Shown here piece by piece: positions 14,489-63,191 of a stretch of DNA of 64,000 nt. Source of the stretch: Podarcis pityusensis (Eukaryota); NCBI GenBank assembly GCA_964106645.2, contig OZ067039.1. One strand, given 5' to 3'. Both the position numbers and the translations under genes were made by a program. The notes beneath the pieces were generated by a model, which saw nothing but the letters and a program-made list of their open reading frames with translations, made no database searches and was not told where the DNA came from. Numbering within the stretch: the first letter of the stretch is position 1; each line of letters opens with the position of its first letter.

Positions 14489-40757
<26,269 letters not shown>

Positions 40758-40997
40758 TTTGTCAGCACAGAGGAACTTTCAGGTACTGCTGTAATGGAAG
40801 TTTTCGAGCACTCCATGTGAAATGTGATCAGAGGATACTGTCGTCTCTTTCCTTTCATTCCGAACAACACTCAATAGCAACTAATTGTGCCCATTCTGGC
40901 GGTAGCTTCATTGTGCATGGTTGAGTTTAAGTATCCTTGTGAATCATATGTAAATGACTTCCTCTGCAGTAGGGAAAATGTAAATTGTGTACGTGGT

Positions 40998-45573: not shown

Positions 45574-46744
45574 GGACATGCCAGGATACAGTGCTACACT
45601 TGCATCACTACATTAAATAAATAGCACTCTTTGATGTAAAAAATTGTAGAAAGATAGCTAGAAATAAAGTTCTGATTCTCTTTGATTCAAATTAATCCAG
45701 CATTTTCAGGAAACAACCCGAAACAATGACAGTGCTATTTAAACGCTGGCAATGGCAGCCTAAAAGAAGAGTCGTTTTATGAGTAATGGCAGGGGGTAAA
45801 TAAATTATGGCTGAAGGAGGAGTAGGTGTTTAAAAGAAGCAGTCACCTGTTTCTGCTAGTCTCAAAGTGCCAGCAACACTTCAAAAAACATATGTAAATA
45901 CAGCAGTGCTGCTTAAAACCAAACATTGACAGTTCATCCAGTGACAGTTCATCTAGCACTAACTCCAGCAAACCTCACAGTTCCTGGCCTGTTGTTGTAG
46001 AATATAAAAACCTGGAAATGACTCAATATTCATCAATAGCACTTGAAATATATGCTTGACCCAATTTGACAGATTTTAGTTTGAACATCGTTGCACTTGA
46101 GCTGGACATGAAGTGTCCAAAAAAAAAAAAAAAGAAAAAAATTCAGGAGAGAGAAAAGTCAATTAGCATCCCTCACAATTTAAAACAATGTTTATTAGCT
46201 TGGGATAAATCTCATGTAAGATTAAATTGAAGGCCAAATATATCCTTAGAACTAGGTGAGTTAACAGTCACATCCGAATTAGTCTCATTCAAAATCATTT
46301 GGGTCTACGATACATGTTATGACAAAAGGAAATGCTTTCATAACCTTTTCCATTTCTTGTACCTACTGAGAGGAATTTCACATAAGCAAAGCCACCGGCT
46401 ATCATTCAAGTGTACACTTAAAAGGAAACGGCTAGTAATGGGAACTCTCTGATAAATGTACCTGTCAGATCCATATTTTTAGAAACCCTCTTCACACTTT
46501 CAAAAGTAGAGGATGAAGCAGTCCTGTGGATCAACCAATACAAGAGGTCTTCTGGATTAGTTGATCACTAGAAACCCAGATGAAGCTGGTGGCACACCAA
46601 CCATCTAACATATTCGTTTTAAACTCATTTACTTTGAAGCAAGCAAACTCATTTCAAAGGGGCTCATTTCCAAATTGTGGAATTAGGATCACATCTTAAG
46701 TTAAATTAGAATCCAGAGCTTCCAAGTATTTTCATTTTCAAGTA

Positions 46745-49355
46745 TCAACATACAATTATAATTTATTCTTGCACACAATGATTTTTTCAGTTATACAATC
46801 TTGTAAATAGAAACTACTGTTATCACAGTATATTTAGATGTAGCCTATAAAAATATCTACTATACATAAAATATTTAGCCACAGTTTTACAGCACGTTGA
46901 GAAATATGAAGGTTGGGGGGGGGGAGAAAGCAAATACTTCTGGTTAAGAAAAGGTTAGAAGAAAATGCTACACCCGCCAATGAAGGCTAGCTTGCAGGCT
47001 AAGCTAACTTAGAGGAGAGTATTTTCCTATAGGAACCACATTTACCACTTAAAATCCAAAGTTATACCTGCACAATTTTCTGCTCATGAATCCTCAACTT
47101 TTCAGGGATGAACTCAAGCCCATTAAGGAGCCAATAATAATAATAATTACTTGTGGCTCACATCTAGAGAAGTTAGGGCTAGGCTGTTGACACGATTCAT
47201 CTGTGATTTAAGCCATTACCCAAAATCCCCTTCTCCAGCTGACACCATACTGTGGGCCAACAGCAGAGCTCTCCCTTTTCATCTACTCCAGTAAGTCGTG
47301 ATCTACCTGAATAAATACATTATGATGTCAAGGCATATTATCTTAAAGGATGGAGTACAGCTAAAGCGCTTCTGAAGTGTTTGATAGTTTAACACAGTCC
47401 TTTTTATGTTTCTGAAATAAGGTTGGCTTTATGGCTTATCTCCAGAACGCTGATTATATTGCTAAGCTACCTTATTAAAGAAATTAAGAACACGGCAGTA
47501 TGTTACATTATAGCACCCAGCCACATAAACGAGTCCCCACTTGGCAAAGCTTACATAGTCCATTGCAGAGAACTCTTAACATTAACAGCATGGCAAGGTT
47601 CGATGAGGTACCAGCACAGACAGCAAGGCAAAAAAGCATTCAAATCACACAGGACAAAGCTTTCTTCGGTTCAAGAACAAACAGGCACCTAATCTGCTGC
47701 TTGCTGATTTGTATCACATGGACAGATTATTTACACTATACGTTGGCTTAGTACAACAAACACAACTGGCCTAACATGCATGAAGTTTTATCACTAACAG
47801 GAATTTCTTTCACACGCCTCCCATTCATTTCAACAGGATATATCTGGAGCATATCCCTGTTGGGTTGTGACCCTAAAGCAGGACTGATCCAATTTCACTT
47901 ACAGCATAGTATCCCTCTTTGCATATAAATACTTGAAAATCCTAGAGGGCCCTATTCTTCACTATGCTCTTGAGCTCCACTAAAGGAATGCACAGAGGCA
48001 AAGATGTGGCTGCTTAAGGTTCACGGAAAGAAAGAATCCTGAGTCCTCATTTTGGGGGGGGGGGTGGAAGATTGTTTCCATTTATGAATGTGCAAATCCT
48101 GTTCTCATCAATAAAGTAGAAGATATGCAATAAAGGATCACTTTCATCTTACCCATCCAATGCATTTTAACTTAAATATCACCAATACATAATAAAAATA
48201 AAAACCCCAAACAGGTAATACTTCATCTGTGACTTTGGTTCAAGAAGATAGGTAAGAGCAAGCTTGCATTAATGCCAATAACTCCGGAGCGCTTCATAAT
48301 AATTTGGTCTCTCTAGTAATTTGTCTTATACCGTCCCTGCACTGTTATTGCCATTCACCTCTGGTAACCACCATGCACCATGCTAATTGCTTTATTGTTA
48401 TTATTATCTGCTCCACTTGGAGCAATGTTTACATTAGTGTCAATTAAAAATCCTCCCTTTTCATAGGCTTCTCTGCTTGGGGTTTGGAGTTTGAGGGGGT
48501 GTAAAAAGGGGGGGAGGACCAGGTAAAACAGTTAAGTAAAATATGCGGTTTTTAATAAGCAGACAAAATAGGTTTGCCGTATGCATGATGTGGAAAGGAA
48601 ACTATTCACACAGTATTCAAATAATAATAATAAACCAGGAGTTCTGGAACATTTCAACAAGATAGATGGAATGCATCTGGGAAAATATTACCTATTCTGG
48701 CTTTCCATTAAATGATGTGAAGCATCAAGTGGAGCCTTTAGTAAAATTACCTAGAAATTAGTGCAGCTACCAAAAAAAAAGAAAGAAAATAAATTGTTTC
48801 ACTGCAAAGCAATGACTTGGAGTGGACAACACTGCTTGTTGCTAAAATTGATATATTAACTGGATTAATATATCTCACAAAGAGACTGGTGGTACCTTTT
48901 GTTGTATACTAAAATAAATAGTTGGAAGAATCCTCGAAGAAACATTGGTAAAGATTTTATATATAATATAGGAATAAAACAGGAAATCACAGCAAGAAAG
49001 GCTTAGGAAAGTATTGCAGAAGAAAGCTAAGATACAGCATTAAGAGAGACACCAGCATTTCATACTTTTAACATCCACAGTCGAAGAACAACAGGATAAA
49101 GACAACATATATTAATTTAAAAGCAATTTCATTCTCTGTTCCACAAATACTTGGTCCATTTCAACCTTTAATGCCAACTTTGCCTTGTGCCAGACCCAGG
49201 CAGTTGAAACCGCGTCTTCGAGAAGAAGAGGAGTGCATGCATTTCTGTGTTGCTTGGCTTCCTTGAAGGCTGCCTTCATTCTCAGGTCCCTGAGTGGTTT
49301 CCTTAGCACTGCTTCAGCAGTTTGGGACGGTGCTGGCAAGGGGAGGTCAAAGGTG
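46745..49355 (-). other. PFKFB4: Probable long 3'UTR of the distal PFKFB4 terminal exon
   Basis: About 2.6 kb, AU-rich, with no young TE that I could see; minus-strand AATAAA at 46762-46767, alternatives at 48391-96 and 46191-96 (the last followed by a U-rich tract). Confidence 0.55.
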
Positions 49356-49415
49356 CTACAAATGATTAGGTACAGTCCTCAAAGCTTCTTCTCGAGAGCG
49401 GCTAACGCATACATT
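49356..49415 (-). CDS. PFKFB4: PFKFB4 alternative (duplicated) terminal coding exon (NVCVSRSREEALRTVPNHL*)
   Basis: Strong acceptor tcttgttctcttttcag|, phase 0, same 60-nt length as the canonical exon and 12/19 aa identical to it. Confidence 0.85.
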   Translation of the reverse strand, partial: NVCVSRSREEALRTVPNHL

Positions 49416-50827
49416 CTGAAAAGAGAACAAGACAGCAAGCTTTATATACTTCACTCAAACACAATGCTTGCCCTTTGGCCAATTCCTGAACACTTCTCAC
49501 TACCTATGGGCTTTCCTTTGCTAGTTCATGGAAATATGGTGAAATTAAGGCTGTAATCCTATGCACATTTACTTTAGCATAAGACCCACCGACATCAGTG
49601 AAGCCTCGCTTCCCAGAAAATATGCACAGAGTTGGGTTGGATAAAATCACAATTTTTTTGTCTTATCTGGTTCCTCTATATATTCATGCGTTGTAACAAG
49701 TTCCATCATTCCGGAATACATTTCTCAATATGCATCACTCTTCAGAGTTCCATTGTTCTGAACACCAGCTTATCAGAAACTCAGAGAGATCCCAATGTGA
49801 GTTTAGCTGCACTTTGAATGCTTGGTCTTAGGCCTCTGGGCCCCTTATGTAGCCCTAGGTGGAAGTCTGGTTTTTTCCAGTGTTCACTGGGAATTACCAA
49901 CATAAGCACATACTGCTAGCTGATTGAACAACCCAGATGAAGTGTTTTCATTATCACAGTCAATGCAATGACACATGCACAAGTCCAGGAGGGAGAGATC
50001 CTTGAGAGTCACAAGTTTGAACCCAGCTGCAATGCCTATACACAATACTTTTCCTTCCCTTTAAACCTGTAACTGTATTAGGCAACAAGCTATGTGATAC
50101 TACCACCTCTCATCACAGATAAGATATGTCATGACAGATTGAACACTCAACATACTAGTCTTCAGGCATTCCAGTGACATATGAAAACAACAAGCAAGCC
50201 GAGACAAATTGCTAAGCTCCGGCTCCATCACCCTCCATAAGTTGGGATGTTAAACATCTGAAGCAGACAACCTCCTACAGTCATGGAGGCTTCCAGTGTG
50301 ATTAAGGACCCAGGAAGATAAAGGTCTGAAATTGCTTAAGGAAGCCTCCACAGATACAAGAGGCTATACAAGTTAGATCAGTCTTTCTCAACCTTAGGTT
50401 TCCAGATGTTGGACTACAACTCCCATCAACCTTAGCTAGCAGGACCAGTGGTCAGGGATGATGGGAGTTGTAGCCCAGCCACATCTTGGTGACTCAAGTG
50501 TTGAGGAAAACAGTGGGTGAGGCTTAGTGCACTTCTCCCCACTTGCAAGTTGTTTTTACACACAAGTAGAATGTCTGAACAACCAAAAATTACCCCTCAG
50601 GGACTCAAAGGCTGCCAATTGCAAATCTCTATCCTAGAAGCTCATTCTATCCTAGACCACAGTCATTCTAGCAGCAGCCATTGGATGCAAGTTACTACCT
50701 GATCCTTGAGATCAAGTTAAACCGCCCTACATAGTTTTTGCTCAGGCCAAAAAAAGCCATTTATACATAGGCTTTGTTTTACCAGTGTAATGAAATGTAC
50801 AAATCGTTTTCTAGTTGTGTTCAGATC

Positions 50828-51009
50828 AGGGCTATTGGACAAGGTAGATCCCATGCATTGTATGCAGAAGACCCCAAGTTCAATCCCTGAGATCTCAGCT
50901 GGGGGGCAATACAAAACACCTCTGCCTGTGACCTTAGAGAGCTACTGCAGTACTGGGCTTACATGGACCAAGAGCCTGATCTAATATGCAGCAGCTTCCA
51001 ACATTCCTT
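50828..51009 (+). mobile_element. Squam3-like SINE, diverged
   Basis: ATGCAGAAGACCCCAAGTTCAATCCCTG ... GAGAGCTACTGC ... ATGGACCAA ... GCAGCTTCC. Confidence 0.55.
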
Positions 51010-51469
51010 ACACATTTTCAAACTCCTATTGGAGTTTTCAAAGTTTGTCCTGTCCAACTGCATCCGGTACTCAACTCTTCCGCACAATATGAACATTTTG
51101 TCCTGTCAGTGAGCCAGACTGACATGTACCCAAGGAGCTCTAATGAGTGCCCCAATGATCTTTACCTACCATCAAGCACACCATCATTTTATTCTAAAAG
51201 CCTGAACCAACTTTTTTCCACCATCAGAAGTGGTACATCTCCCCAAAAGCGAGATTTCCAGGTAACAGATTTGGAAGCAGTGAACTCATCTCTTTGCAGG
51301 ATGAAATGAGTCATCCTACTCTTCAATGGAAGTACGAAACACAAATGTGTAAGGCACATACCCAAGGCACCCTAATGATTATACCTGCTCCAGTGTAGGT
51401 TTGCATGGTTCATGGCAACTTTTAAGAAAATTGCTGCTAATACGTTTTCCATAAATAAATCAAAACAGG

Positions 51470-51800
51470 AATTTGTTTCTAAATGGGAGGTTTTCAAAGA
51501 ATATCTGAAAAATAAATATAGTAGTTTAAATTCTGTTGCAGCATTCGAGCATTCAAGGAACTTCAGTAATAGTTGCTAGGTAGATAGAAGAAATTAGATT
51601 TATTGAGAATAAGTTTAATTATGAAAAAAATGTGTATTGGCAATAAGTAATATGAATTTGAAATATGGAATGGACGGGAAGTTGGGTCTTTAGTGTTAAG
51701 ACCAATAGATGTTTTATTGTTTGCCAAGAAAATTATGTGTCTATGGTTATTTTTGTAATTTGTGTGTAATTTGGTATTTGTGTTTTTTTGTGTGTTTGTG
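51470..51800 (+). mobile_element. Old L1-like ORF2 end and 3'UTR fragment
   Basis: KWEVFKEYLKNK resembles WKKFKDYLQK at the end of the 23111 element and is followed by a T/G-rich UTR; approximate bounds. Confidence 0.5.
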
Positions 51801-52446
51801 TAAGCTGCTAGGGTTTCATACTACGTAGCCTGATCTTCCAGATCCTCTCCTCCCTGTATTACCTTGACCAGACATAGGCCTATGCCTGACCTTGACTATT
51901 ATCCAGGAAAGACATGAGATCCCTAATCAAAGCACTGTAGGGTGTTACAGGTCTTGCATCTGGCCTTTCAGATTGACATCAGTTAAACATCTTAATGGAA
52001 TCCAAGATATACATAGATACAGAAATCTTAACCAGTCCTGAAGAACAAAAAATCCACTATGTAGGATCTTTTGTTTCAGTTCTCAAATGCAAGACCACCT
52101 AGAGATTCACAAGGATATGTGCTCCTTTCCCTTACTTTGCCACGAGACATCATCATAATTGTGATATCGATCTTACAAAACTAAAACTCCTGGATTCAAG
52201 CCAGGGGGCTAACCTTTTCCAGCCAAGGGCTGCACTGACCCATGCCCAACGCTGTGAGCAGCACGGTAAAGTGGGCTAAGGCCAAAGAAGGAAATTAATC
52301 CCTTTTATTATCTTTCCATCTAAAGTCAACCCATTTCTTTCCTTCCCCAATTCATTCTATTTGTATTTTCTTTTATATACTTTTAGCTGATTGTTTTCCC
52401 TCAAAGTCCCACTTCCCCCACTCAAAATTCCCACAAATTCATTTTG

Positions 52447-52452
52447 TTTATT
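52447..52452 (-). terminator. Candidate poly(A) signal for the proximal PFKFB4 terminal exon
   Basis: Minus-strand AATAAA followed by GU/G-rich sequence; an ATTAAA at 54627-32 is an alternative. Confidence 0.4.
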
Positions 52453-52903
52453 CACTGTGATGCTGATGCCATTGGTTTTCTTTGTTCTGCTGACACGGGG
52501 AGAGGAGAGAAATTGCCAAAAACTTTTCAAATAAGAAGCCATCCTCTTAGCTGATGGGTTGACCACTCCTGATCTAAGCAATGTAACCATGAGCACCACC
52601 GAAGCTGATTCTCCAGCCCCAACCCCCAACATGAAGTTAAGTCTAGTGAAAATCAGTTGAACAAAGCAAGTGCCTCTGCTGGGAGAGAGGCTGTTCCTGG
52701 GAACATCTCTGGCCCCTATAATAGTTTTGTTTATATGTGGCATTGCAGGATTCAAGGGACAACCCTTTTTCTAATCTACCAAACTTGTTTACAAGATGCT
52801 TAGAATTTAGAGTATGTAAGTTAGCAGTAGCTACACTGCTTTGGTTTGGTTTTGTGAATCACCCTGGGAATTATTTGGCTGGCAGGAAGTATGAAATGAT
52901 TTA

Positions 52904-53145
52904 CGGTGGTACCTTGGGTTACATACGCTTCAGGTTACATACGCTTCAGGTTACAGACTCCGCTAACCCAGAAATAGTACCTCGGGTTAAGAACTTTACC
53001 TCAGGATGAGAACAGAAATCGTGCTCCGGCGGTGCGGTGGCAGCGGGAGGTCCCATTAGCTAAAGTGGTGCTTCAGGTTAAGAACAGTTTCAGGTTAAGA
53101 ATGGACCTCTGGAACGAATTAAGTACTTAACCCGAGGTACCACTG
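52904..53145. mobile_element. Tc1/mariner MITE, subfamily B (inverted relative to the 9263 copy)
   Basis: TA TSD and the same TIRs; its reverse complement aligns along the whole 9263-9474 copy. Confidence 0.9.
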
Positions 53146-54686
53146 TATTTATTTTTTAAGTATTGCAGTTTACTGGCCCACCTCGACATATGGGGAAGCT
53201 CCACCTTTTTCCTTTTGGAATTTTAGAGCATCATCTTGAGGCACAAATGCCATTGTGTGCACTAGAATGTTTTCTTCTCAGACCCCCCCCCCCCCAAAGC
53301 TGCTTTTGAATCTCCAAGGAGGTAAATTTATGTCAGGGGTTGGGAACTTCATGCCTGGGGGCTTCTCTGTCTGGGTCTCAGGACTCTCCTCAGGCTCCTC
53401 CTCTTCCTCCTCAGCAACATACCCTCTCTCCCCAGGCCACACCCCTCAGCAGCCCAACTTTGCACCATCTACAGCGTAGAATGTAGAAGCAGCAGGGAAA
53501 GCAGTAGTTGTGTATTATTCCTTTCCACAAGTGCCATTTCTTTACTCCATATTGACAGTGGTTCTATCCAGAAGTGTTCCAAATGCATGTTTACCCTGGT
53601 ATTAGTAATGTCTAGTAACTTCACGGGAGTAAGCAATAGCAGTTTGCCTCCGTTTGCCAAACCGTAGAAGAAATATATTTCTATGATTCTACTTTATAAA
53701 GAAAACAAATTAAGACATTACTACTATGAGTCCTCTTCATATAAATTATAAATTAGGGCTGCCACCCTATTAAAAACACCTTAGTTGACTGATTGAATCT
53801 ATTAACTAAAATTCATGCCATTTCCAGAAATTGCATCTGAATAGAATGAAAGAGTCCTGAAGCAAGAAGCATATTTCTTTTTTTCTTATAAAATGTTTAG
53901 TTTAGTTATAGCAGGCAACCTCTTAGAAGAGGCATTCCTTCTCATGTGAACGAAAAGAGAAAGGCCTCTTTTTAATGGGTGTTTAAAAGAGTCTTAACAC
54001 CACCTGCAGTTGTGTTTTTTTTAAAAACCTAACAATATTTTTAAATTAGCTTTTAAAAATCAGCTGTCAAAGTAATTAGAAGTACAAATTAAACTTTAAA
54101 TGATCAATTAATCCCATAATAAATTTTGCAGACCTTTTTTTGAAATCACAGAAATACATCTTCCACAAAGACAGGGGCAAGAACACTATTTCCCACAAGC
54201 TACTATTAAACAGTCATAGAATTCTATGGTTCTATGAATTAGCAGACTATCTACATTGCCGATACTATTCACTAGCTGCAGAACTAACTGTAGAAAGACA
54301 TGCTTCTCTATGTAAAACAATCCAATCACTCAAGAGAAAATAAAAATACTCATTAATAGACAACTGCCCCATATTATCTCCCAACAGGGTTTGAGTGTTT
54401 GATCAAGCTGTAATGGACATAAAACATCAGGTTTAAAATTAGCAATCACCAATTGATCAAGTGTTATATCAGAGAAGCCAGTAATCAGATGGCTCAGCCA
54501 ATTAGTTCCAATCCAGGGGGTAGGGGACAATAAGATTTGATTGTTTGATTTCTAAAAGCCACGAGCTACACAAAAACTGATATTATCTGTGGATGATTCC
54601 AAAGTGATTGGAACGATTGAAATAATTTTAATATAATATGATGAAAAGAAGCACCACACGTTTCATAGCTGATCAGGACACGGGCT

Positions 54687-54746
54687 TCACTGGTGAGCAG
54701 GGACAGTTACAAGGGCTTCCTCGGGAGGTCTTGAAATGTCTACATT
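54687..54746 (-). CDS. PFKFB4: PFKFB4 canonical terminal coding exon (NVDISRPPEEALVTVPAHQ*)
   Basis: acacag| in phase 0; the peptide matches the PFKFB4 C-terminus as I recall it and differs from PFKFB1-3. Confidence 0.95.
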   Translation of the reverse strand, partial: NVDISRPPEEALVTVPAHQ

Positions 54747-55140
54747 CTGTGTAATAATAAAAATACAGAGGAAAATGTTTATCATGCAACATGGCCGGTC
54801 AGCTTTCTTCACAAGTAAACAGCCGAGCTTGTTAAATTAACAAATATAGTCACTTATCTAGAGCAATAAAGCTTTTTTTAAAACAGAGACAGCGGAATTG
54901 CCCTCTTTATAGACTGCATTTAATAATTCTGTGGACCACAGGCTAAGTGCTGGCAGCTCTCCTCAAAACACACACACAGAAACTGCTTATGTTTAGAGTA
55001 TCTCAACTATATAACTATATTTAAAAGCTTGTAATTCATTACATTATGCATAGCACATTCATACTGCAAAAAGCAAGTCTTATCAGCCGGATACCATTAA
55101 ATAAAAGTGAACAGTTGGGAGGGGGTTGGGTGCCAGGAGA

Positions 55141-56030: not shown

Positions 56031-57840
56031 TATAAGAAGCTCTAATGGGCCTTAGAGCCGAGCCTCCTCTTCTGCCACCTCAGCCCTGGAAACCATTTCC
56101 TTTCATTGGCCCCTTCCAGACTTCTGAAATGTCACAAGTTGTGCCTTCACGTTCTGAAGTTTATCAGCACAGCAGGAACAGCTGAAGACAGAACTCTTAA
56201 GGTCAATTCACTGCTGAAGCATCATGGGTCTATGCTAGCACTGCATCATGGTTGTGCCAGTGCAACTGCAGCAGCAGTATTTATGTATCAGGAGCACAAA
56301 ATGCCGTGAACTTAGGTACTAGAAACCTCCGAACAAATGGGTTCAGAACAAACAACAGAAGAACAGAACACTATCCGTTGCCTTCTCAGAACCTTTAAGG
56401 CAAGGGTTGTCAATGCACTGCCCTCCAGAGGCTGTTGGACTCCAAATCCCATCAGCCCCAGCCAGGACAGCCAATGGTCAGGGATGATGCAACTTGTAGT
56501 CCAACAACATGTCAATCTCCCTTGCTTTAGGCTTATGCTAGCAGTGCCTCAACCCACCCTGGGAACTTGGGAACTCTTCAATTGTGGATAAAGAAGAAGA
56601 AGGAAAAGTTTCCCTTTGGGATAACACTACCTGTGCTTGCCATAACAGTCCTGATTAATGCAAAACAGAAAAACAACAAACATGGCTGAGAAGCAGGAAG
56701 TGGAGCGGGAGAAATGAGGACTAGGCCACCACCTGGATGAGGGCACACTCTCTCTCTTATTCACTCACTAGCCCAAATGAGTATCTAATCACAGGAACTG
56801 TCTGCGGCTAATGAATATCATCACTACTTTTCACATCTCTCTCCTTTCTCTCCACTGATAACCAGGAAGGCTAAGAGGGGGAAAATAAGCAGCACATTTT
56901 ATTTATTCATTTCCTTTAGAGCACTTCCTTACTCCTGAATATATAAAAAGACCTTTAAGCAGTCTACAGAAAGGGGGAACCCTCATATGAAACAGTTCAC
57001 AGAAATTACTAATAAATATTTACAGACAGCATATTCACCTTCTACAACACCTCTCAGCCTCCTGGCTCTCATCCATGGCCCAAACAAACTTTCAGACTAA
57101 CCCCAAAATAACTCACAACAAAGAGGGTTCCTGAAACGTGCTGGCATTACCATAGTTCTTTACTCTCGGGCTTGCTTTTATGGGCAATCAATCCTAAGAA
57201 ACAGGTGAAACTGTGTTCTATGGGATTTACTCCCAACTATGTGAGTAGGGAACTGCACCCCTGTGTGTGTACACAGGTTGGCTAGTAATATTGGAAGACA
57301 TGTATATGGCCGGCTTGTATTCTTATTGTGACAAAACATCGTTAAACCTGCTACCCAAAACTGTGCAGCTTACAATAACTACTTACTTTCAGTATCCAAA
57401 CATTGTAAAACAGGAATTTGGCAGCCAGGGCTGGCTAAAATTGTGAGCAGCCTTGGAAAAAAAGTCTTAGTGGCTGTTTTGATTCATTTGATATCCAGTA
57501 TCATTTTACCATAATCAAGAATATGATGGCAAGAACATGGTAAAAAATCTCCCATGAAACTTCACTAAAAATAGAGTTACTGCTCAATCCTAAAGGACAA
57601 TCTTATCACTGTCAAGAGGATACCTACAGTAACCAAAATATGTTCCTTTACGATGAGCCAGAGACCCTGCAACTCAAACCTATGAGACACTGAGCAGCTG
57701 ACAGAAACCAATCCTAAATCTCAAAAATATATTCTAATGTTTTCATCCAGGTTCTGTTCTTCCTGCAGTTTCACACAATTACGCACCATGAAGCCAGATC
57801 AGAACTGAATGCTGGTATTGTGCCGCTGCATCAACCAACC

Positions 57841-60043: not shown

Positions 60044-60108
60044 CTGTGGTTTGTCTCTGTGCGTATTTACAGCTTCAACATTCAGAAATATAGACTCCAC
60101 CTTGCAAC
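60044..60108 (-). CDS. PFKFB4: PFKFB4 penultimate coding exon ([21 protein letters not shown])
   Basis: ttacag| ... |gtaggt; 65 nt, ends in phase 0. Confidence 0.96.
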
Positions 60109-61694: not shown

Positions 61695-61757
61695 CATAAG
61701 CCACTGGGGTTAGCTTTAAGACAGTATGCAGTGGGCACTTGAGATAAGGCAGTTGTT
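61695..61757 (-). CDS. PFKFB4: PFKFB4 exon ([22 protein letters not shown])
   Basis: ttttag| ... |gtaagc; 63 nt, in frame. Confidence 0.96.

Positions 61758-62936: not shown

Positions 62937-63191
<255 letters not shown>

Follow-up and report, generated by a model that had tools for sequence, protein, structure and literature searches.

PFKFB4 sets fructose-2,6-bisphosphate levels and, to our knowledge, has been studied almost exclusively in mammals, where it has one tail. Among the related enzymes, alternative splicing of the 3' region of PFKFB2 varies the C-terminal regulatory segment and keeps the catalytic core (PMC13446353), and six PFKFB3 transcripts arise from variable-region exons (PMC7926708). 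An initial annotation of the window, by which we mean the whole 64,000-nucleotide stretch of Podarcis pityusensis DNA analyzed here, proposed that PFKFB4 has a second, anciently duplicated terminal exon encoding an alternative C-terminal tail. Our analysis led us to conclude, with a probability of roughly 0.8, that minus-strand positions 49415-49356 open the true downstream terminal exon of PFKFB4, that this exon lies behind an 87-nt cassette coding for the mammal-type tail, and that skipping of the cassette would give the alternative tail. We found no description of a two-tail switch of PFKFB4 in the searchable literature, and no paper on non-mammalian PFKFB4 tails or on the function of the alternative isoform. 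What is added here is the lizard layout of a cassette and a shared terminal exon, the contrast in conservation between these two exons, and the absence of the terminal exon at one placental locus.

The gene was identified as PFKFB4 by its bisphosphatase-domain exons, its conserved end and its 94-95% DNA identity to Podarcis PFKFB4 loci. All of its features described here are on the minus strand of the window, which contains no N. A bisphosphatase-domain exon at 63050..63179 encodes 43 residues plus 1 nt, and in an exon-by-exon search its segment 63179-63051 was 98-100% identical to database PFKFB proteins, with the matches named PFKFB4. It is followed by an exon of 22 residues (61695..61757), the peptide of which lies between an ag acceptor and a gtaagc donor, and by the last constitutive coding exon (60044..60108, 21 residues), which ends in phase 0 with ..NTHRDKPQ and the letters ...CACAG before a gtaggt donor. 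The penultimate exon and the tail in the window are identical to those of Podarcis muralis PFKFB4 X1 (P0224); this and other database proteins, among them P0228 and P0378, represented the full-length forms in our comparisons.

Two tail exons follow, 5.3 kb apart. The canonical one is preceded by an intron end reading ...attattacacag and by a flank (54747..54846) that is conserved among lizard, turtle and bird. It starts at 54746, and from there to 54687 it reads AAT GTA GAC ... CAC CAG TGA. The cassette as a whole occupies 54660..54746, with coding positions 54746-54690 (NVDISRPPEEALVTVPAHQ), TGA at 54689-54687 and 27 nt of untranslated sequence before a weak donor, AAAC followed by gtgtgg, of which the intron part starts at 54659. 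As a continuation after 60044, its first letters are AATGTAGAC. The initial annotation had described, 5.3 kb further on, a phase-0 acceptor with 19 codons and a stop, and we confirmed this on the minus strand. The intron here ends ...cttgttctcttttcag, within a polypyrimidine tract and AG acceptor at 49416..49440 (gcttgctgtcttgttctcttttcag), after which the exon reads AAT GTA TGC ... CAT TTG TAG; its first letters from 49415, as the other possible continuation after 60044, are AATGTATGC. The coding segment at 49356..49415, recognized from its sequence and from its relatives, comprises the 19 codons of NVCVSRSREEALRTVPNHL and the TAG at 49358-49356. The putative 3'UTR of this exon (46180..49355) is roughly 2.6-3.2 kb long, as judged from contig extents and from AATAAA signals at 46767-46762 and 46196-46191, which start 2588 and 3159 nt past the stop; the first of these agrees with the earlier description of about 2.6 kb of UTR-like sequence.

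Direct reading of both exons bore out the reported identity of 12 of the 19 residues, seven of the 12 being encoded by different codons. The two tail copies of the window are near saturation for synonymous differences (pS 0.68, pN 0.34). A six-frame scan of the window returned matches of at least 11/19 at the two tail exons only, and the best matches in 30 block-shuffled windows were 6-8/19; the resemblance of the two exons is therefore true homology, and chance is excluded. Exchange of the tails alters seven of the last 19 residues, including PP to SR, with N1, V2, R6, E10, A11, L12, T14, V15, P16 and H18 shared. Every alternative-type tail conserves a Ser at position 7 with acidic residues after it (RS[RS]E[ED]).

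Evidence that the downstream exon is spliced came from sequencing runs containing the stretch 46700-49500, among them 18 small data sets of RNA type that derive from several related species. The share of words of 46700-49500 found in the RNA-type runs was about 0.4 each, equal to that in DNA runs of relatives, and one DNA run, probably the source, held 0.97 of them. We compared contigs of the RNA-type runs X1, X2 and X9, and of the relative's DNA run X20, with 48860-54855. X1, X2 and X9 come from relatives about 3% diverged from the window and not from its own species; their RNA nature was a guess, and we took them as RNA because of a GT..AG joint and spliced contigs. Over 48860-49415, contigs that stop at the acceptor had depths of 54, 89 and 78 in X1, X2 and X9, and those on the intron side had depths of 21, 13 and 26. 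The end points were 49415 in X2 and X9 and 49418 in X1, and in X20 the contig passed straight through with no break at the 49415 acceptor. The contigs ending at 49415 are 2265, 2292 and 3242 nt long and thus reach about 47170, 47130 and 46180. X2 (depth 22.4) and X9 (depth 42.7) also contained a joint that links 49415 to 54660 across 5244 skipped bases and reads CT..AC on the plus strand, that is, GT..AG on the minus strand; this joint was absent from the DNA run X20 and also from X1. These observations showed that the 49415 acceptor is used in RNA of relatives, and that the canonical exon is usable as an 87-nt internal exon (54746-54660), its acceptor and donor both used, spliced onto 49415.

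The X1 contigs gave a different picture. One of them (record 8) crosses 54660 unbroken and reaches 54751, 5 nt past the acceptor, where 19 non-fitting letters follow; as CACAG ends both the intron and the exon that stops at 60044, this extension fits splicing from that exon. The X1 terminal exon exceeded the adjoining intron in depth by about 34 and had no joint to 54660, so that this excess calls for another partner, and the contig stop at 49418 is the point at which the intron and the 60044 exon, which have CAG in common, cease to agree. From this stop and the excess depth we infer a direct junction from 60044 to 49415 in X1, contig depths being a poor measure. A search with a 90-residue C-terminal piece found no lacertid transcript fragment with the direct junction; the sole fragment that spans it is the ENA fragment P0438, in which ...NTHRDKPE is followed directly by NVGVDRSREEALRTVPNHL, the tail being spelled as in birds and turtles. 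Near the acceptor, the intron (49416-51450, minus strand) was deeper in the RNA-type runs than the canonical region (20.7 and 12.9 against 7.4 in X1), and its depth rises towards 49415, which could represent intron retention, an extended form of the exon or an internal start. The intron between the tail exons also holds high-copy repeats at 50260-50659 and 52860-53259, with depths of 10^4 to 10^6 in all runs and numerous joints and loose ends that stem from other copies.

The initial annotation had pictured two mutually exclusive last exons, and this part of it held incompletely: there are two alternative tails, but the canonical exon also serves as an internal 87-nt cassette joined to 49415. 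In the strict form of this arrangement each terminal exon would have its own poly(A) site and the canonical exon would always be terminal. It would account for the position of the canonical exon, which is last in mammals (cheetah), for an ATTAAA 54 nt past the canonical stop, with an AATAAA at the aligned place in Calypte, and for the contigs that extend downstream past 54660 (X1 record 8, to 54135, and X9 record 27). These read-through contigs, however, are equally explicable as a retained intron. The GT..AG joint from 54660 to 49415 in two RNA runs makes the canonical exon internal, the same internal layout is found in Xenopus isoform X5, and X2 had zero coverage of 53660-54659, so that the canonical exon had no UTR of its own in that sample. 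We therefore considered strict mutual exclusivity improbable, although polyadenylation at a separate site may occur alongside use of the cassette. The canonical exon of Calypte has TT for GT 27 nt past the canonical stop (locus L003, 53430-53460), and an AATAAA lies slightly further on, so that in birds the canonical form may be terminated by polyadenylation and not by splicing.

We compared the locus with those of two Podarcis genomes, Chelydra, Calypte, Xenopus, Salmo trutta and cheetah. Both exons are present in the two Podarcis genomes, where the alternative tail is identical to that of the window at all 19 residues and the annotated gene ranges extend exactly as far as the alternative stop codon. 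The proposed search for an orthologous exon in other sauropsids likewise succeeded: the alternative tail matches that of the window at 17/19 residues in both Chelydra (canonical exon at 49283, alternative exon at 56204) and Calypte (53370 and 58012), and at 14/19 in Xenopus. In these five genomes the alternative exon is always downstream of the canonical-type exon, with the same order, phase and length, and the phase-0 acceptor, the 19 codons and the stop position are kept in all six genomes when the window is included. The two exons of Xenopus laevis (L006, 52019-52471) consist of a 72-nt canonical-type exon with no stop, an intron of about 320 nt and an alternative-type terminal exon, and isoform X5 reads the first and then the second in frame, giving tandem tails. 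In Salmo trutta pfkfb4b there is one tail exon, of the canonical type, with nothing similar up to 10 kb downstream. The two-exon layout therefore dates back at least to the common ancestor of frogs and amniotes. The initial annotation knew of no such exon in human PFKFB4, and the cheetah locus, the sole placental one checked, has the canonical exon only, with no match of at least 9/19 within 10 kb downstream; at least one placental mammal thus appears to have lost the alternative exon. In the window, Podarcis, Calypte and Xenopus, the convergent downstream neighbor is PRKCD; its last coding exon lies at 40400-40760 (plus strand) of the window and ends near 40757. In cheetah, COL7A1 and UCN2 instead lie upstream of PFKFB4, and the 10 kb that follow it contain no called gene.

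The two exons differ in how they have been conserved. For the alternative exon, the window and Chelydra differ by 10 synonymous and three non-synonymous changes (pS 0.71), and Chelydra and Calypte by eight synonymous and no non-synonymous changes; these counts, together with the orthologues, indicate that the alternative exon is under strong purifying selection, in agreement with the earlier proposal of an old duplicate kept in this way. The flanks of this exon showed no conservation among lizard, turtle and bird. For the canonical exon, lizard and turtle differ by three synonymous changes only (pS 0.21), and its flanks are about 70-80% conserved over 80 nt on each side among lizard, turtle and bird. 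The flank at 54747..54846 matched in 66/95 columns against Chelydra, including a 15-nt turtle insertion, and in 62/86 against Calypte, and its last 25 nt before 54746 are almost invariant in the three lineages; the sauropsid cassette flanks are absent at the cheetah locus. Regulated cassettes are usually marked by nucleotide-level constraint that covers a short exon and its surroundings, and the low pS and conserved flanks of the canonical exon, which are typical of such exons, fit a cassette role and the joint observed in RNA. The cassette donor AAAC/GTGTGG is kept in Podarcis and Chelydra, and Calypte has AAC/TTGGGG at this place; as Calypte lacks the GT, the splice from cassette to terminal exon may not be universal.

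Isoform tails were tabulated from PFKFB matches obtained by the exon search, by searches with the matched proteins and from cluster members, and they include the human protein P0178; the query P0093 was an orang-utan model. The tail NVGVDRSREEALRTVPNHL, which shares 17/19 residues with that of the window, ends the predicted PFKFB4 of Calypte anna (X1, which represents a cluster of 388 sequences), ducks, geese, Chelonia mydas and Chrysemys picta. Among squamates, the tail of Ahaetulla prasina X3 (P0378) is identical to that of the window at 19/19 residues, Crotalus tigris X2 ends in NVCVSRSREEALRTVPNNL (18/19), Sphaerodactylus X2 in NVCITRSREEALKTVPNHL and Anolis sagrei X1 in NVCVNRSRDEALRTVPNHL, and canonical-tail isoforms are found in the same species for Crotalus tigris (X1) and Anolis sagrei (X2). 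Amphibian PFKFB4 ends NVDVDR[ST][ST]EDALQTVPNHL in Xenopus laevis X1-X4, Pelodytes, Eleutherodactylus and Ambystoma, so that in this group PFKFB4 usually carries the alternative type. These annotated isoforms of relatives, with the contigs that end at the acceptor, upheld the claim of an alternative C-terminal tail whose exon is spliced in RNA. They also removed the implied novelty, as the alternative-tail isoform is already known from RefSeq/UniProt models for squamates, birds and turtles and is standard in amphibians. The passerine isoforms P0384 (Ammospiza X1) and P0392 (Passer X1) have a third, unrelated tail, PKLE[RS]KTSS.E.AGQ.GEGN, after ...NTHRDKPE, which suggests that songbirds have yet another alternative terminal exon.

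It could also be argued that the downstream copy is a relic, never translated in the lizard of the window and functioning only as 3'UTR after a cassette that contains the stop, as the sole directly seen junction onto 49415 comes from the stop-bearing cassette. We regarded this as less probable still than strict mutual exclusivity. Against it, the amino acids are conserved from frog to bird to lizard while synonymous change is saturated, and the 19-codon frame, stop position and phase-0 acceptor have survived in 6/6 genomes. RefSeq alternative-tail isoforms exist in four squamate genera, P0438 spans the direct junction, and X1 combines a break at the exon boundary with excess depth in the absence of the cassette joint. 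A chance resemblance, or a copy inserted from a paralogue (for example PFKFB1) and unlinked to PFKFB4 splicing, can be dismissed, because, although the tails of PFKFB1 and fish PFKFB-like proteins also read NVDV.R..EEAL.TVP.H., shuffles gave at most 8/19, and across six genomes the exon has kept its place, phase and length 3' of PFKFB4, to whose exons it is spliced.

The favored reading, a terminal exon shared behind a cassette, distinguishes two transcripts and takes the terminal-exon arrangement to be common to amphibians, turtles, birds and squamates. With the cassette included and spliced to 49415, a splice that was itself observed, the protein ends in NVDISRPPEEALVTVPAHQ and the downstream exon is solely 3'UTR. 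The usual rule for nonsense-mediated decay requires a stop-to-junction distance of 50-55 nt, and because the cassette stop is 27 nt before the junction, the cassette-included mRNA is too short-spaced for this decay. With the cassette skipped, 60108-60044 would join 49415 in phase 0 and the protein would end in NVCVSRSREEALRTVPNHL, as annotated in other squamates and predicted here for lacertids. This switch would replace only the last 19 residues, after the bisphosphatase core. The two tails may differ in their effect on the kinase/bisphosphatase balance, phosphorylation or partner binding, and the Ser at position 7 of the alternative tail is a candidate phosphosite. An AlphaFold2 model of Ahaetulla X3 (48-row alignment, human P0178 left out) had a mean pLDDT of 57, with the tail below 50, and was set aside.

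More tentatively, and with appreciable doubt, we suggest that tetrapods inherited a two-tail PFKFB4 switch in which frogs mostly skip the cassette, sauropsids use both tails in sample-dependent ratios and placental mammals lost the terminal exon, the tails tuning the enzyme differently, for example via the Ser of RS[RS]E[ED]. If this were true, the mammalian tail would be a derived, fixed state, and the terminal exon was possibly lost when the PFKFB4-PRKCD neighborhood broke. The second tail itself, as found in frogs, turtles, birds and squamates, has been maintained by strong selection at least since frogs and amniotes shared an ancestor, and it may be the main form in some lizard samples. 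Work on PFKFB4 in Xenopus and chick (neural crest, embryo patterning) uses a protein with a non-mammalian tail.

The closest counterparts of the lizard exon are the RefSeq/UniProt ...TVPNHL isoforms, which include those of Ahaetulla prasina (X3), Crotalus tigris (X2), Sphaerodactylus (X2), Anolis sagrei (X1), Calypte anna (X1), Chelonia mydas (X6/X9) and Chrysemys picta. Their exon is the same as that of the lizard, in the same place after ...NTHRDKP[QE] and with the same length and stop; these entries are automatic models, and they show no sequence-level difference from the exon of the window. Amphibian PFKFB4 resembles that of the lizard in having an alternative-type terminal exon (NVDVDRSSEDALQTVPNHL, 14/19) with the canonical-type exon just upstream, used as a cassette in X5. 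However, the frog cassette is 72 nt long and has no stop, so that its inclusion gives a tandem tail, whereas inclusion of the lizard cassette ends the protein, and the intron between the tail exons is about 320 nt in the frog and 5.2 kb in the lizard. The mammalian PFKFB4 tail, NVDISRP[PS]EEALVTVPAHQ, is the same as that of the lizard cassette exon and is represented by the rat testis enzyme (PDB 1BIF/2BIF/3BIF), the constructs of these rat structures including the canonical tail; in the mammalian gene (cheetah) the canonical exon is terminal, unlike the cassette use seen in the lizard. Finally, the tails of PFKFB2 and PFKFB3 are long, carry mapped phosphosites and are not duplicates of one another, whereas lizard PFKFB4 swaps two paralogous tails of 19 residues each.
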